Part shown: one piece after another, positions 17,436 to 25,570 of the stretch
Layout of the letters: every line of letters begins with the position of its first letter
Position numbering within the stretch: position 1 is the first letter of the stretch
Origin: Cyanophora paradoxa CCMP329
Taxonomy: Eukaryota > Plantae > Glaucophyta
Length of the DNA: 64,000 nt
NCBI GenBank assembly: GCA_004431415.1
Contig: QPMI01000557.1
Coordinates: 1-64,000, forward strand
Direction: 5' to 3'
The notes under the pieces: model-generated
Seen by the model: only the letters and a program-made list of their open reading frames with translations
Databases searched by the model: none
Told to the model about the DNA's origin: nothing
Translations under genes and position numbers: made by a program

Positions 17436-18812
17436 ATGGCGGACGTGGATCGCGCCGCCCTGGCGCAGGTGCTCGCGTCCCGGATGCGTACGTTGCGCCC
17501 CGATTTCTTGCTCCTCGATCGACGGCACGCCCCGCGGAGCTGAAGTGAGCTATACGCACACGCGCAGGCGACCTGGAGGAAGCTGAGGAGCGCCTCCGTG
17601 TGTGCGAGGCGCGCCGCTCACGGCTGGCGACAGAGCTAGAGATGCAGCGCGGCGCCTCATCCAGCTCGGGCTCAGGCGGTGGGCTGGCGTACGCGTGGGG
17701 CGGGTGGTCGGTGATCGGGGGTCGAGACTCGATGGAGGACACGTGGGTGGCCCGAGAGCTGCCGCTGCGGTGCGGCGGCGCGGCGCTCCTGCTTGCGGTC
17801 TTCGACGGCCACGGCGGGGCGGAGGCGGCCGAGCTGTGCGCCGAGCGCCTGCCCGAGCTCCTCGGCGCTGACGGGGACGCCCTCTCCGACCGGCCCGCCG
17901 CCGCCCTCTCCCAGGTCCGCACCCCGGCGCCTCGGCCTCGGCCCACAGCTCCCGCTGCAGCCGGCGCCGGCCCCCGCCGCCTCCGCCTTAAGCTTCGCCG
18001 CGGGCGCGGAAGGGGCGGAGGCGACGGGAGCGCAGGCGCTGGAGGCGCTGCACGAGGAGTTTGTCGCGCGCTTCCCGGAGCGGCCCTCGACGGGCACGAC
18101 CGCGGCCGCGGCGCTTCTGGTGCGGGCGGCGGCCGCGCCACCCCGCCTCGTCGTCGCCAACCTCGGGGTGCCGGCCCCGCCGCCCCCGCCGCCCGCCCCG
18201 CCCCCGCTCAAGCGAGGCAGGACTGCGAGGCGGTCCTCGGGGCGGACGGCGGCGCCACGCCCGTCCTCCTTACGCAGGCCCGCCCCTACGCTGCTGCTAT
18301 GCCCCGCGCCGCCGGGCCGGGTCGAGCGGGGCGCAGGTGCACCGGGGGTCGTCGGAGGGGGAGGCGGCGGGGGTGCGGGGGCGGGGCGGGCGAATCGACG
18401 AATTCGGCTACGTGCGCCTCGGGGAGGGGGACGAGGGGCCCTGCCTCGCCGTCACCCGCGCCATCGGCGACGCCGACTTCGCCCCGGTCCTCTCCCGCGC
18501 CCCGCACCTCGCCGAGCGCGTCCTGGCGCCCGGCGACGCCCTCCTTCTCCTCGCCTCCGACGGCCTCTTCGACGCGCTGCCTCCGCCCCACGCCCTCGCC
18601 GCCGCACGCCTCCTCCTGCAGCCCGGTGCCCGCCCCTCGCCACCGCCCCCGCCTCTCCAGCTCACGCCGCCGCAGCCGGCCAGCCGTGCGGGGGCGCCTC
18701 GAGGGCGGTGGCGGTGGCGTGCGGGGCGCTGTGCCGCGAGGCGGTGGTGCACCGGCTGGCGGACGACAATGTCACCGTCGTCATTCTGGCGCTAGCAGCA
18801 GCTGCGCCCTGA
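17436..18812 (+). CDS. Protein phosphatase 2C (PPM family), multi-exon
   Basis: GGRDSMED, VFDGHGG, GTTA, VANLGD, LAVTRAIGD, LASDGLFD, DNVTVVI. Confidence 0.93.
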
Positions 18813-19631
18813 CGATTGATCCACCTCATAGCTCAACTTAAACAGTGAACGATACGTATACAGCTGGCCAGCTGGCGATACAGGTCACTCCGGTTAGTCG
18901 ATACAGGCGATACAGGTTACCTTAACTTTCTAGGTTAGCTATAGCTATATATATAGCTATAGCTACAGCTAGCGATTGCGAGCTTGAGGTTCAACTTCAA
19001 GTGACTCAGTGACTTGCGATTGCAATTGGCAATACAATCCGATGATCATGTAGTCCGACGGTCTCATGAAGTTCATGCCATGCCATGATGATCGGATGAA
19101 TCGGTGAATTCGAAGTTTCACGGGTCCGACGGTCCGAGTTTTGCGAGGGCCCGGGGCCGCCTCATGATCATTGTCTGAGTCCGACGCCGTGACGGTCCGC
19201 GGTCAGGGCCTACCAAGAATTTTCTTTGCAATTGCCACATCATGGCATTCTTCAAGTTCTAGATCTTCGCCGCCCTGCCGCCGCTCTGAACTTCGGAACG
19301 CGTTGCAGTTGCTGTTGCCAAGTCGCTCGCTGCATCTCAATGCCTTGACTCAGTGATGTCTTCTAATTCCGAAGTTCTAGATCTAGATCTTCTTTCTCCG
19401 TTTCGCCCCGAGAGGGACAGGCCTCGCCGAGGGCTGCCAGGCTGCCATGTACCCCGGCCCAGAGAGGGAATGTACCCCGGCCCCCCCCCCCCTCCGCCCC
19501 CCCCCTCCGCCCCCCCCTCCGCCCCCCCCCCCCTCCGCCGCCCCCCCCCCATCCCCGCCCCCCCCCCCCCCCCCTCCCCTCCCCAAATTGCTGCGCGCTC
19601 GAACTTGAACCCCGCTCATCCGACGGGCGCG

Positions 19632-22600
19632 CTACGAGCTCGAGGCGGGGAACGGGGCGGAGGGGATGGCGGGGGGCGGGCCGGGCCCGGGGGCCCCCTC
19701 CATGTCGGCGAGGAGGCGGCGGAGGGCGTCGGGGGGCAGCGCGATGTACATCCGCTCCCGGCCCCCGGCGCCCCCCGAGCGGGTGCGGATCTGGCGGGGG
19801 GCGGGAGTGAGGGGGGGGCCGGGGGCGGGGGCGGGGGGCCGGGGGCGGGCGGACGAGGTCGTGGTCGCGGAGCTGGGCGAGGTGCGCCTTGAGGGCGAGC
19901 TCCGAGGAGAGGACCATCTGCCCCCGGCACGCCTCCAGCAGCTCGTGCAGCGTCATGCCCCCGCCCTCCCCCCGCTCCAGGCCCTCCTCCCCCAGCAGCT
20001 GCCCCCGCCCCGTCGGCCCCCGCCCCGCCCGCTCCCGCCCGCCCCGCGCACCCGGTACACGCTCCGCGCCACCGGCGTGAGGCTCATCAGCACGACCAGC
20101 GCCGCCCGAAGCTGCGGCGCGCCGTGAGGCGCGGCGGGGCCCAAAGAGGGGCGGGGCGGACGCGGGACTCGGTGCCGCCCTCGCCGGCGGCGCAGATCGC
20201 CCGCGCGAACTCCGTCTCCCGAGTGTACCCCTCCAGTGTGCTCGCCTCTGCGCCGCGTCGGCCCCAGTGGGGCGGGGCGGGGCGGGGCGGGGCGGGGCGG
20301 GGGGGCGCGCCGTGCCAGAGGAAGTTCAGACGGCGCGCCCGCTCGCGGTCCCACACTGCAGCGGGGTCGACAGGGGCGGGGGGCGGGGGGCGCGGCGGGT
20401 CGGACGGAGAGGGGCGGTGACGTGGTCGACGGAGGCGATGAGGTGGGCCCGCGGCAGCGCCGCCAGCGCCGCCAGCGCCTCCTGCGCCTCCGCGCCGCGC
20501 AGCCCCGGCCCGTCGATGTTGTGCACCACTGGGGCCGCGCGTGAGCGGGACGGGGCGCGGGGCGGGGGCGGGAGCACCGAGGTAGAGGGGCGGGGCGGCG
20601 GGGGCGGCGAGGGCGGCGCGGATGGCGGCGAGGTGGGGGGCGGGGCCGCGCCAGGGGAGCTGCAGGCCGAGGGCCTCCTCCGCGAGGGCGGCGAGGGCCT
20701 GGCGCAGGGAGCACGCCGGGGAGTAGCCGAGCAGGACCGCCACCGGGCCGTCGACGCACCGCTGCCCCCGCCTCGCTCGCGCCGCGGCTCCCGGGGGCGG
20801 CGCGGGGGCGGCGCGGGGCGGGGCGCGCCTGCTGGGCGAAGGCGGTGAGGAGGGAGGCCTTGGAGCCGAGGCCGTAGAGGGCGACGCTGAAGCCGCACTT
20901 GAGCTCGAAGAGCCAGCGGTTGAACTGCTGCTCGAGCGCCCCCCGCAGCCGCCCGCGCTCCGCCTCGTGCCCCGCCCCAGCGCCCCCGCCAGCCCCGCCA
21001 GCTCCTGCGCCAGCGTCGGCGGCGCGGCGCGGGGCGGGGCGGGGCGGGGCGGAGCGGGGCGCGCCCGCTCGGGGCCCAGTCGAGGTCGGCGAGGGTGCGC
21101 TCCGAGGTGCGCGGCGGCGGCCCCGCGTTCGCCTCGAAGTAGTCGTCCCCGCCGGGCCCGCCGGCCCCGCCCCACGCCCCGTCTCCCTCCTCCCCGGCCG
21201 TCACGCCCCGCCGCCGGCCGGCGCGCGCCCCGCGCTGGCCCCCGCCTCCGCCTCCGCCTCCGCCTCCGAGCCGCTCCCGCTCCCGCTCGCGCTCGCGCTG
21301 CCGGCCGCCTCGCTGCCCGACGCCGACCCGCTCCCCGACTCGGAGCCGCCCGCCGCGCCGCCCTCCCCCGCATCCGCTTTCGGGGCCCCGGCGCCGGCTT
21401 GGAGGCTGCCGCCTTGGCCGCCTTGGGAGCCGTGCCCGCCGGCTCCTTGGGGGCGCGGGTGCCGGCGGCGCGGCACCAGCGGCGGCGGTGGATGTCGAGG
21501 CCGAGGGCGCTGCGGAACTCGTTGCCGCACGCCCCGCACCGCACCGCCTCCGCCGCCCCCGCGCCGACCCCCGCCCCGCCATCCGCCTCGCTGTTCCGCG
21601 CGCACGCCTTGCTGTGCACCTTGAGGCCCTGCCGCCCACTCGGCGCCGGCACGCGGGGCGGGGCGGGGCGGGGCTCGTGAAAAGGCACCGCAAGCGAGAG
21701 GCAGCGCTGCCCGCACCGCGTGCACTCGAACGACCCCACGCCGCCGACCCGATTCTCCGCCCCGCCGCCCGTCGAGCGTCGCGCCGCTGCCACCGGCGTC
21801 ACGGCGGCGGTGCGAGGCGCGGGGCGCGCAGCACCGTTCGCCTCGCTGCCGCGAGAGCTCGCCTCCGAGGGCGGTTCCTGCGTCGAGTAGAGCTGGCGTG
21901 GCGTGAGGGCGGGGCGGGGTGGGAGGGGAGGGGGCGGGGCGGGCACGGGGGCCGGGGGCCGGCTGTGGCGCTTGCCCTTGGGCGGGGCCCACGCGACGCC
22001 GTCCAGTCCCTCCTCGCGCCACGCCCCCTGCCGCCCACTCGGCCCCAGCGCCCCGGCCGCAGCGCCCCGGCGCCACCCTGCCCCCGCACCTCTTCCTCCT
22101 CCTGCTCCTGCTTCTCCTCCTCCTCCTGCTCCTCCCCCTCCTCGACCTTTCGCGAGGCGCCGGCGGGAGCCGCCGCTCGCGCCCCGCTGCAGCGTGCGCG
22201 GTGCGGGCCGAGGCCCTTTTTGCCGACGAACTGCTTGCCGCAGCCGGGGCAGGGGATGAGGGGCGGGCGGTAAGCTTCGCCGAGCTTGGCCTTCTGCCGC
22301 GCCTCCTGCGCGAGCCGCCGCTTCTCCCGCTGCCGCTCGTTCCTCGCCTCCCGCTTTGCATCCTCCTCGTCCGCCTCCGCCGTGAGCGCCGGCGGCTTCG
22401 GGCTGGGCTTCTTCCGCGGCGGCGCCTCCTCGTCCTTCGCGGCGCTGCTCGCCTCGCTCTCGCTCGAGCTCCCGTCACCGCTCCGGGAGGCGCCCCGGGC
22501 GAGGGCCATGCCTCGCGCCCCGCTGCAGCTTGCGCGGTGCCGCCCGAGGCCCTTTTTGCCGACGAAATCCTTGCCGCAGCCGGGGCACGGGATGAGGGGC

Positions 22601-24515
22601 GCGCGGCGAGCCCCGTCGCCTCCTTCGTTGGCCGAGATAATGACGTGCATGCTGCCCTCCTCCTCGTCCTCCTCCTCCTCCTCCTCGTCCTCGTCTTCCT
22701 CCTCCTCCTCCTCTTCCTCCTCCTCTTTCTCCTCCTCCAGATTGCGTTGCTTCTGGTTGCGCACCCTGCGGCGCGGCGGGGGCGCCGCGGCCGCCTCTCC
22801 GCCCTTGCAGAACTTGACGTGGATGACGAGGCCCTGCGCGGCCGGCTCGGCGCTGGCTGGCGCAGTGGGAAGGGGAGAAGGGGGGACGTGGGGGCGCGAG
22901 GGCGGGAAGGGGGAAGAGGCGAGGAGGGGTGGGGTGTGGGGGTGAGGGTGGGGGTGGGGGGGGGGGGGGGGGGGGTTGGAGGGGGGGGGGGAGGTGGGGG
23001 TGTCGGACCGATGCGGCGATGAAGGTCTTCTTGCAGCGGGGGCAGGTGAGGGAGCGGGCGCCGCCGGAGGGGGTGGGAGGGGCCCGCGGCGAGAGGGTGA
23101 CGGGGGCGGGTCCGGGCTCGTCGGCCGGCTCGTCGGCGGGGCCCTTGCAGTGGCGCTCGTGGATGACGAGGCCGGAGCGCGTCATCAGCGTCCGCCCGCA
23201 CACCGCGCACGCGAACCCGGGCGCATGCGCCGCCGCCTCCTCCTCCTCCTCCTCCGTCTCGGACTCGGGATCGGCCTTGGCCTCGCCGGTGCGCGCCCCG
23301 CCCCGCGACGGCCCCGAGCTGCGCTCCGCCTTCTGCCGCGCCTCCTGCGCGAGCCGCCGCTTCTCCCCCTGCCGCTCCTTCCTCCCCTCCCGCTTTGCAT
23401 CCTCCTCCGCCGTGAGCGCCGGCGGCTTCGGGCTGGGCTTCTTCCGCGCCGGCGCCTCCTCCTCGGAGCTGCCGTCGGTGCTGCGGGAGGCGCGGGGGGC
23501 CTTGCCGCGCCGCGCCCTCTCGGCGGACGAGCCCGCGGCGCCGCTGTCGGCTTTGGCGCCGCCTGTGCAGCCGCCGCGGTGGCGCCCAAGGCCTGCTATC
23601 TCTGCAAACGCCTTGCCGCACTTCGGGCACGCGATCGGCGGCGGCTGGCGCTCGCTGCTGTCGCCGCTTGCCTCCTCGCCTTGGGACGCTCGCCGGAGGG
23701 TCCCGGAGCAGTAGCTGCGGTGCGCGCGGAGACCCTGGGCGCTTCCGAACAGCTGACCGCATCCCGCGCACTTGAACGCGCCCTCCTCCTCCGACGAGCT
23801 GCCGTCCTTGTCCTCCGCCTTGCTGCCTCTCCCGCCTTGCCCGCCGTCGCTGGCTCGGCCAGCCGCCCTGCCCCGCGCCTGCCCCTCCCGCGCGGGGCAC
23901 CGGTGGGCATCGAGGTCGTCCATACCCGAAAACCCGGCCCCGCACAACGCGCAGGAACACACCTCGCTGCCCGCGCTCCCCTCCGACCGCGCTGGCTCCG
24001 TCCGCGCCCTCTTCTTTGCCGCACTCTTCTCCGCCGCCTCGTTGCTGTCGCTCGCAGCTGTTTCTCCAATTTCGATCGCAGGCTTGACTTCATCTCCCGA
24101 CGGCGGGGCAGCCTCGGGTCCCAGCGCCCCTGCAGCGAAGACCAAACGCTTGTGAGCGCGAACGCGCCTGGGGGCCTGCGGGCGGGGCCGGCGAACACTG
24201 GCTCTTCGGGTCATTCAATGGTGCGTCGCCGTTGTTCTTGAGCGTCTTCCTGACGAGGCCGGCCTCGAAGGCTGCGTCGACCTCGCTGCGCCACGACTTC
24301 GGCTTCTTCCGCGACCCCAGAAGCGAGTCCCAATGTTCCTCGACGTATTTATATACGTCCTGCTTGCGCGTCGTTGCCTTCTTGCTCGCTTTCAGCAACG
24401 CGCGGATCGCCGTCTGCACAGCGCTCGCCCTGCCGCGCGGGCCGCTGCTCAGCTAGCGAGCTGCAGCAGCGAGCCGCGGTAGAGCGTACCAATCGAGCTC
24501 TTCGTGGGGCGCCAT
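19632..24515 (-). CDS. ORC2: Origin recognition complex subunit 2 with long N-terminal extension (winged helix plus nine C2HC zinc fingers)
   Basis: ORC2 core about 19632-21150: DDYFEA..RTSERTL, FNRWLFELKCGFSVALYGLGSK, VVHNIDG, LIASVDH..APL.WD, VLMSLT, LSSELALKAHLAQLRDHDLV. Upstream exons carry CxxC-x12-H-x1-4-C fingers with no visible intergenic gap. The core call is strong; the fusion is less certain. Confidence 0.85.
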
Positions 24516-25570
24516 CTGGTTGATAAGCAACGTCCGACGCGAGCGCGGCAAGTCTCGAAATCGTCTACCCCCGCCGCGCCAGCTCTAGCCGCGAGTCCGA
24601 GGGAGTCTAGCCGCCGTTAATCGGCCTTGGGGAAAGGAGAGGCCCTTAGGTCTGTGCGTATCTTGTGGCAAACTTCAAATTGATTTTATAGACAAAATTT
24701 TTAGACCTAGGTACCCATTTTCGACCCTAGGGAGCACGATGGCGGCGCTACTTTTCAAATGCGACACCTCTAACAAGCACTAACAGCACGTCGAGAAGCG
24801 TCGAAAAGCATTTTCCCGGAAAAAAACTCAAAGCGCAAATCACATTGGCCTTCCAAGTCGAAATTTGAAAATTATTAATTTCAAGAGACCGCATCCCATT
24901 CGCTAGGAATTAGTGTCCAAATTAACGGGGCGCCACGATGTCGGCCTGCAAATTTGTATGAGACAGGGTCGCAGTGTGCCACGATGTGGGATTTAAAAGT
25001 ATTTGATGCGTTGATTGAAAGATATTTGAAATAAACAATTTAGACAGAGCCTTATTACTGCGAATTACATTCAAATGATTCATAGATAATTATTAACCAC
25101 CTCCAAAAAGCGCCGAAAGTCGTTTCCATTCAGCTGAACTTCGGAAACGACCAATGGGCCCCTCGGGGCCTGTGCTCGGTACAACTGCGGCCGATTGGGC
25201 CCCGCATCGATCTCTGTACCCTTGCGGCACAATTCTGTACCCTCTTTACTTGAGTGTGTACCCTTGCCGAGTGGACCCCCCTGTTTCTCCTCCCCCCTCC
25301 CCCGTAACCGCGCGCGGTTGCGGGCCCCCGTTTAAAAACAAAGAGCTCCCACCCTCACGCCTTGAATTCGAAGCCCCAAGACCCAAGGCCACTCCTGCTC
25401 CGCAGGGACTCGCTTGTTAGCAGCCGGAGCCCAGTCGGACCGGCACAATCCGAGCGCTTGCGCATGCTGCTCATTTACTGTTGTTTGCGAGCGTGCTGCG
25501 TCTTCATTTGTACTTGTATCTGAAACTGACCTCACCTGACCTGACCTGCCTGCCTGAGCCTGCACCCTTC

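Follow-up and report, generated by a model that had tools for sequence, protein, structure and literature searches.

A Probable Fusion of ORC2 with a Winged-Helix and Zinc-Finger Arm in Cyanophora paradoxa

The gene analyzed here encodes ORC2, which is one subunit of the complex that recognizes replication origins (origin recognition complex, ORC), in the glaucophyte Cyanophora paradoxa CCMP329, and lies within a stretch of 64,000 nucleotides (nt) of contig QPMI01000557.1, assembly GCA_004431415.1, which we call the window. The gene is real and probably fused, a variation on the familiar theme of ORC subunits that bear an additional module for chromatin or DNA, and it has so far been seen in just one species and one imperfect assembly. 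In our reconstruction, a single minus-strand gene would run from 24515 to 19632 in approximately 17 exons, its product being an ORC2 of about 1300 residues in which a lineage-specific arm would precede the core. Three components would make up this arm: an H1/forkhead-class winged helix, eight isolated zinc fingers, and linkers that are alternately basic and acidic. Fusion with ORC2 is likely because the coding signal is unbroken, RNA contigs run across the region, and a stand-alone ORC2 would have no start codon. Taking the evidence as a whole, we lean toward one fused gene, combining a canonical core with a tethering arm, as its best explanation.

The ORC2 Core and Its Public Gene Model

The locus corresponds to a public gene model, tig00021122_g18441.t1 (EukProt EP00741 Cyanophora paradoxa), which is 1214 amino acids (aa) long and has exons that match the window letter for letter on the minus strand, from 24515 to 19635. 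When the long open frame over fingers 7 and 8 was searched against proteins of 437-1391 aa, this model was the sole match; all searches used as queries either single exons of the window or this model and its parts. The precomputed Pfam domains of the model are zf-C2HC_2, zf-C2H2, RecA-like_ORC2, and WHD_ORC2. The claim that this architecture is undescribed holds insofar as we found no account of it in the literature, though the finger-ORC2 fusion is already public as a nameless gene model. An exact look-up of the model protein in other assemblies gave no record.

The ORC2 core is complete and canonical beyond doubt. On the public model, the RecA-like domain of ORC2 (PF04084) scores 207.4 bits against a cut-off of 25.1 (E value 2.8e-61), covering profile positions 27-251 of 251, and the C-terminal winged helix (PF24882) reaches 38.8 bits where 27.3 are required (7.2e-10); the same families score 46.4 bits on one exon open reading frame (ORF) of the window and 27.7 bits on the exon ORF 19363-19956 of the minus strand, respectively. 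The solved chains of ORC2 that are matched come from human (5uj8_E/7cte_B, 4.4e-48, with an alignment spanning chain residues 284-561), Drosophila (4xgc_B, 1.5e-44), and yeast (5v8f_B, 4.1e-26). These values fully bear out the original prediction, which had called the core unmistakable. The Pfam match begins at model residue 902, which corresponds to position 20969. Like the canonical ORC2 of human, Drosophila, and yeast, the Cyanophora protein has a RecA-like domain plus a C-terminal winged helix, and it shares with them the family motifs YGLGSK, HNIDG, and ASVDH...APL..WD. These two domains should occupy the same places in the ORC ring as their counterparts in other eukaryotes.

Zinc Fingers and Linkers of the Arm

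The RNA evidence for the arm comes from three runs (X1, X3, and X7, from two studies), which were judged to be RNA by their spliced contigs; another run, X8, has the character of DNA. The mRNA shows eight motifs spaced as C-x2-C-x12-H-x3/4-C, with the pattern F/I-x-C-x2-C-G-x2-F-x5-GL-x2-H-x3-C. As in classical C2H2 fingers, Phe and Leu occupy the hydrophobic core of the beta-beta-alpha fold, but the last zinc ligand is Cys instead of His. The family zf-C2H2 (PF00096) scores 49.4 bits on the public model, against a cut-off of 25.2, and 37.9 bits on the ORF of exon 4, while zf-C2HC_2 (PF13913) scores 34.3 bits (exon 5 ORF) and 27.5 bits against a cut-off of 27. The public model has finger starts at residues 207, 347, 402, 496, 608, 729, and 771, one more finger having been dropped. 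The model intron 23773-23714, which removes the finger at 23770-23708, is spurious because RNA contigs cover 23877-23419 without any joint. Two other fingers are split by introns (23008-22834 and 21688-21629), the first half of finger 7 lying at 21724-21689.

Nine fingers had been proposed originally and all nine motifs are present where they were placed, but the one near 23930 lies in an intron removed in the RNA of three runs, so that eight are left. This motif (23953-23897) has an aberrant spacing, C-x2-C-x12-H-x1-C, and falls within an 84-nt, in-frame GT-AG intron at 23962-23879, which is spliced in X1, X3, and X7 and unspliced in the DNA run X8. The intron keeps a coding-like codon bias in frame f0, and an isoform retaining it would possibly add a ninth finger.

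The fingers are spaced by about 55-140 residues via low-complexity linkers of 60-130 residues that are either basic, with sequences including KKPSPKPP and KRRLAQEARQKA, or strongly acidic, with 27 Asp/Glu in one span of 60 residues. Short conserved inter-finger linkers of the TGEKP type, which would characterize a tandem poly-finger protein, are absent. Tandem C2H2 arrays read a long contiguous DNA word, whereas the solitary and widely spaced fingers of Cyanophora cannot; they are isolated modules that would make at most many weak, spaced contacts. Direct repeats with 85-95% identity at the DNA level are formed by 22162-22282 with 22498-22618 and by 22279-22434 with 23318-23464. Since these are duplicated modules of finger and linker, the arm is still evolving, and it seems to have grown partly through recent internal duplication.

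The N-Terminal Winged Helix

The core of the N-terminal domain is encoded by exon 2 (24197-24429, model residues ~9-86), which is flanked by the RNA-confirmed introns 24489-24430 and 24196-24130. For model residues 1-110, the best Pfam family is ASH2L-like_WH (PF21198), with an E value of 0.003 and 18.1 bits where 25 would be required; on the exon ORF it scores 17.7 bits, again under the cut-off. The Linker_histone family (PF00538) has no match to the same residues at E ≤0.1, and no single Pfam family can claim the ORC2 copy of the domain as a member.

An exhaustive HMMER search among 1.84 billion representative proteins of all lengths found one real relative of the domain, Cyanophora tig00000204_g17755.t1 (E value 2.3e-5); a second match was discarded as a repeat artefact, showing 8 stretches and unrelated Pfam noise. 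The relative, of 634 aa, has two copies of the winged helix, at residues 1-85 and 304-390, and passes the threshold of Linker_histone with 33.8 versus 22.4 bits over profile positions 7-37 only. A profile built with the three winged-helix copies places histones H5 and H1.0 at the top ranks of the PDB, weakly, with E values of 0.016-0.25. The predicted fold of copy 1 of the paralogue, with a predicted local distance difference test score (pLDDT) of 78, has helices (H) and strands (S) in the order H-S-H-H-S-S, and Foldseek retrieved with it almost only H1/H5 and forkhead domains, at a probability of 0.99 and template modeling (TM) scores of 0.6-0.7, H1 being matched best. The predicted model of the ORC2 copy itself is poor (pLDDT 60). 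The ESM Atlas gave no usable match with the whole protein and, with residues 1-95, leads that are all below 0.9, namely HARE-HTH, NFRKB WHD, and SAMD1 WH.

On the strength of these models, the N-terminal domain appears to be an H1/forkhead-class winged helix, having the globular domain of linker histones as its nearest family. The resemblance to the winged helices of ASH2L and PHF1 that had been noted by eye survives with regard to fold class, as indicated by the Foldseek results with the paralogue. At the family level, the ASH2L-like match stays under the Pfam cut-off and H1 fits better; neither PHD nor Tudor domains accompany the Cyanophora winged helix. The likeness to the globular domain of H1/H5 is confined, at the sequence level, to the first two helices, and the domain sits on ORC2 rather than on a Lys-rich histone tail. 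As for the paralogue, each of its winged helices is followed by Ala/Pro/Lys/Ser repeats and its C-terminal region has no Pfam match; it may be an unusual linker histone with a double globular domain.

Possible Role of the Arm in Comparison with Other ORC Subunits

In functional terms, the question is what such an arm would do for ORC. Going beyond the domains, the splicing, the transcription across the region, and the two assembly omissions, all of which are observed, we propose that the arm would tether ORC to nucleosomal or GC-rich DNA via many weak contacts. The tether would then do what the BAH/PHD modules and disordered region of ORC1, or the AT-hooks of Orc4 in Schizosaccharomyces pombe, do elsewhere. 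The Orc4 protein of S. pombe has nine N-terminal AT-hooks before a canonical core, and they set the sites at which ORC binds. Cyanophora resembles it in presenting an N-terminal array of many small modules before the canonical core of an ORC subunit; it differs in the subunit carrying the array (ORC2 vs. ORC4), in the modules themselves, and in having a GC-rich rather than AT-rich genome, and its DNA binding is putative. That the arm is a DNA or chromatin tether affecting where ORC binds is plausible, if somewhat short of probable. A more elaborate version of the same idea, which we regard as unlikely, is that ORC2 places the complex on chromatin: its winged helix would compete with linker histone for docking on the nucleosome dyad or on linker DNA, while eight modules of finger plus basic linker would read short GC-rich motifs, the origins of this GC-rich genome being thus specified.

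A serious rival to tethering is that the fusion is real while the arm has a regulatory or scaffolding function, such as binding of proteins or RNA, nuclear import, turnover, or formation of condensates, origins being chosen elsewhere. Although we consider this rather doubtful, several features of the arm speak for it and thereby weigh against the tether. The fingers are single, far apart, and devoid of tandem arrangement, and isolated fingers with long linkers commonly bind protein or RNA rather than DNA; the linkers are of low complexity, including the highly acidic tract; and the arm looks young and changeable, with its nearly identical duplicated modules and no orthologs found. The N-termini of yeast and animal ORC2 are disordered regulatory regions. 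Moreover, no AT-hook core (RGRP or GRP) occurs in the public model. It contains no full site for cyclin-dependent kinase (CDK) either. Conversely, all solved members of the winged-helix class (H1/H5, forkhead, ASH2L, and PHF1) bind DNA or nucleosomes, basic linkers are present in the arm, and, as the GAGA factor illustrates, a lone classical finger can bind DNA when basic stretches adjoin it. The tether remains our preferred role for the arm, at the modest strength given above.

A further point against the proposed tether is that the same architecture was not found outside Cyanophora using as queries the region of fingers 7 and 8 (proteins of 437-1391 aa), the winged helix (all lengths), and the ORC2 core (668-2124 aa). 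This absence of orthologs is weak evidence, since the word-based searches were swamped by low-complexity candidates, of which 8000 were scored. The search with the ORC2 core found only one other long ORC2, an NCBI protein of 1736 aa from Tribonema minus, which has no fingers. It carries ORC_WH_C at residues 609-698 and the ORC2 domain at 1349-1600, and represents either two ORC subunits fused together or two neighboring genes that were merged in annotation.

The N-termini of known ORC2 proteins are disordered stretches of approximately 0-300 residues and are not known to carry folded DNA-binding modules. From canonical ORC2 the Cyanophora protein differs by its arm of about 900 residues with a winged helix and eight fingers, and we found no earlier description of this layout for ORC2. 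A survey of ORC in 132 species, with no glaucophyte among them, reports additional domains on ORC1 only, namely BAH and, in green plants, PHD (PMC7058166), and a 2026 preprint on origin recognition mentions neither zinc fingers nor AT-hooks on any ORC subunit.

The Junction between Fingers and ORC2

The original prediction held that coding sequence runs through short introns into ORC2. Continuous codon bias and RNA contigs sustain this claim in part, but the sequence as given has four frame changes between 21400 and 20960 and a TGA at 21203. We scanned the junction for codon bias after training exclusively on exons outside 21478-20830 and found coding potential without a gap in frames that change: f0 to ~21390, f2 to ~21232, f1 over ~21220-21060, f0 over 21030-20975, and f2 from 20965. 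The first switch (f0 to f2, ~21375) coincides with one extra G in the G-run 21369-21365, inserted after 21364 in contigs of X1, X3, and X7, and the last (f0 to f2, ~20968) with a base added at 20969 in one contig each of the RNA run X3 and the DNA run X8; both of these 1-nt insertions are read as omissions of the PacBio assembly. The third switch (f1 to f0, ~21045) fits either a 71-nt, phase-0 GC-AG intron at 21075-21005, which is rich in CCCCG repeats like the RNA-confirmed introns, or a 1-nt omission in a C-run. We rejected a GC-AG intron at 21064 having the consensus donor GCGCGCCCCG because, with its 60 nt, it would not change the frame and would leave this switch unexplained, whereas the 71-nt alternative fits the frame with a weaker donor.

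The second switch (f2 to f1, ~21222) is the critical one. The frame would stay open if the assembly lacks a further base within ~21232-21204, as we infer. A GT-AG intron removing the TGA at 21203 was rejected, because fewer than 30 nt separate the f2 from the f1 bias and the next AG would cut into the coding piece in f1. A loose contig end at 21205 in run X3 has 30 letters that are absent from the window, and was taken to belong to a chimeric or foreign contig. A homologous-protein search with model residues 662-858, seeking spliced RNA contigs over the junction, found nothing.

Several points weigh against an open passage from fingers to ORC2. The switch near 21222 has no read support, the relevant contig alignments being cut at the repeat 21300-21230; without it, frame f2 with the RNA-backed base at 21364 ends at the TGA 21203-21201. 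The DNA run X8 lacks the insertion at 21364, which could reflect a strain difference or a real frameshift. The f1 piece at 21187-21070, encoding DDYFEANAG...TSERTLADL, has no Pfam match even at E 10 and no match to ORC2 in the PDB; its resemblance to an N-terminal box of ORC2 is a presumed one, and its BLAST match to the ORC2 of Tribonema was dismissed as being at chance level. Furthermore, contigs that span two genes do not prove a single mRNA, and overlapping untranslated regions (UTRs) have been reported for neighboring genes of Cyanophora (PMC6704402).

The argument in favor of the passage comes from start codons. No ATG is present in any frame of the minus strand between 21373 and 20087, while the conserved core begins near 21000; a stand-alone start of ORC2 is therefore impossible. 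The ATG at 21373 is in the frame of the finger protein, so that a translated ORC2 must start there or upstream, and must consequently pass 21222 in any case. If this passage is open, then a single frame takes in both the finger ORF and ORC2. We thus consider it probable that fingers and ORC2 form a single fused ORF, beside which a shorter isoform may exist.

Transcription and base composition point in the same direction. All bins between 19488 and 24900 contain RNA, whereas depth is zero below 19488, and one RNA contig of 877 nt from run X3 (X3-7) is unbroken from 22318 to ~21220. The GC fraction is 0.73-0.85 across 19550-24050 and falls to 0.38-0.54 solely at 18800-19400 and 24650-25250; within 21000-22100 its lowest value over 60 nt is 0.68, and five motifs of the poly(A) and TATA types have zero occurrences. 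The claim that neither an obvious promoter nor an AT-rich gap separates the two parts is accordingly upheld. That one mRNA crosses 21000-22100 would agree with the long contig and with the lack of such motifs. A scan for bacterial promoters and terminators, which is irrelevant to this gene, found nothing.

An improbable alternative is that two tandem genes have been merged by gene prediction and contig assembly: a protein of about 870 residues with the winged helix and fingers would end at the TGA 21203-21201, while the 5' part of the ORC2 transcript would overlap the 3' UTR of the upstream gene. This would take at face value that the RNA-supported frame reaches that TGA in the window as given, and would agree with the dense, end-to-end genes, overlapping UTRs, and unreliable models of Cyanophora (PMC6704402), as well as with the fact that the public model joins the two parts only through spurious introns. 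Yet it leaves ORC2 without an ATG; the coding-like bias has no gap, with f1 starting from ~21220; there is no dip in GC at the junction, unlike at true gene borders; and two proven 1-nt omissions occur within the same 400 bp.

It is less probable still that the reference copy is a decaying, frame-broken ORC2 locus with a functional ORC2 elsewhere in the genome, for although the window has several frame breaks, run X8 agrees with it at 21364, and a second ORC2 of normal length could escape a protein search covering 668-2124 aa only, the core is intact over ~280 residues aligned with human ORC2, the gene is spliced and expressed with codon bias kept in every exon, just one stop exists in any frame across the junction, and a DNA contig, too, speaks against the break at 20969; a pseudogene is thus argued against because the core is intact, spliced, and expressed.

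Returning to the fused gene, its frame errors find an explanation in the way the genome was assembled. Canu was used to assemble PacBio RSII reads, and polishing relied on Quiver and Illumina data, places with zero Illumina coverage being filled from PacBio (PMC6704402); frame errors are explained because such places stayed uncorrected. The genome has 67.6% GC and its authors call for manual curation of gene models (PMC6704402). Reads differ from the window by 1 nt at 20033, 20803, 20969, 21364, and 23064. Each of these places falls in a G/C run where the surrounding stretch has 80-85% GC, matching the pattern that residual homopolymer errors of PacBio produce. The public model bridges the frame breaks with the invented introns 21478-21405 and 21203-21099, then follows f2 over 21098-20970 despite a negative codon bias there, and skips the f1 piece. 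This model is wrong in at least four places, 1-nt omissions having been patched by invented introns, and other gene models in such GC-rich regions of the assembly probably often carry false introns.

Exon Structure and Surroundings of the Gene

Seven introns are confirmed by RNA: 24489-24430, 24196-24130, 23962-23879, 21946-21893, 21834-21787, 20828-20762 (GC-AG), and 20161-20112. Intron 23008-22834 is known from the public model only and has GT..AG ends, and the remaining introns of the RecA-like part have GT/GC..AG ends. The GC-AG introns 20762-20828 and 20248-20310 have the donor GCGCGCCC, while 21005-21075 is a candidate only, with a weaker donor; one of these three is RNA-confirmed. Intron interiors are rich in (CCCCG)n, and CCCCG repeats fill also several GT-AG introns of the ORC2 gene.

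All exons lie on the minus strand. The coding part of exon 1 (24490-24515, model residues 1-9) begins with the first ATG of the open frame at 24515-24513 and opens with MAPHEELD(W). The start proposed at 24515 is confirmed, since the RNA-backed intron 24489-24430 joins MAPHEELDW to ASAVQTAIR..., and RNA contigs reach at least 77 nt upstream of the joint between exons 1 and 2. After the winged-helix exon, exon 4 (23009-23878) encodes the fingers 23770-23708, 23629-23567, and 23209-23147, the half finger 23044-23009, and the basic linker KKPSPKPP, on the evidence of RNA contigs, motifs, and Pfam. Exon 5 (22090-22833), supported by Pfam and by RNA contigs over 22389-22648 and 22150-22318, holds the half finger 22833-22807, a poly-Glu/Asp tract, and the fingers 22587-22525 and 22251-22189.

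The interval 21629-22089 contains three small exons (22027-21947, 21892-21835, and 21786-21689) and four introns (22089-22028, 21946-21893, 21834-21787, and 21688-21629), the second and third of which are seen in three RNA runs. The exons agree in length with contig X3-7, whose 298 nt lying between 22150 and 21627 are exactly accounted for by the segments 22149-22090, 22027-21947, 21892-21835, and 21786-21689 plus position 21628. The first part of exon 9 (21204-21628), covered by RNA contigs over 21627-21309, has the second half of finger 7 (21628-21602), finger 8 (21538-21473), and then a low-complexity sequence of Gly/Ser/Ala/Glu in f2. It is followed by the TGA in f2 (21201-21203); no frame contains any other stop from 21480 to 20830.

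The start of the ORC2 part (20829-21200), delineated by codon bias, comprises the f1 piece 21187-21070, f0 over 21004-20970, and then f2 into the RecA-like domain (...FNRWLFELKCGF...YGLGSK). The rest of this domain (19975-20828, PF04084), with the motifs HNIDGPGLR and ASVDHVTAPL, is encoded by exons 20761-20579, 20529-20407, 20353-20312, 20248-20162, 20111-20052, and 19998 onward. The last segment (19632-19974) consists of the C-terminal winged helix of ORC2 (19974-19734, PF24882) and a tail ending with the stop codon 19634-19632. An RNA contig over 19598-19790 stops matching at the exon edge 19790.

Immediately upstream of the gene, at 24617-24747, lies a high-copy dispersed repeat, where the DNA run X8 has a summed depth of 8137 (bin 24532-24725) and 2716 (bin 24726-24900), and where many contigs with varied flanks break at 24617-24621 and at 24747. 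At the opposite side, the adjoining plus-strand open frame 17600-18841 opens with motifs that by eye suggest a PP2C phosphatase (GGRDSMEDTW and AVFDGHGG).

Conclusions

A practical lesson of this analysis is that omissions of 1 nt in a GC-rich PacBio assembly yield gene models patched by invented introns. With regard to the biology of replication, the known answers to how ORC locates origins in organisms other than budding yeast are the modules of ORC1 (BAH, PHD, and disordered regions) and the AT-hooks of Orc4 in fission yeast. If the more elaborate reading above is true, Cyanophora would have an origin-specifying arm that reads DNA or nucleosomes on an ORC subunit never known to do so. An ORC2 with an H1-like winged helix and eight fingers would constitute a third, independent solution to the problem, coming from the least studied lineage of Archaeplastida.

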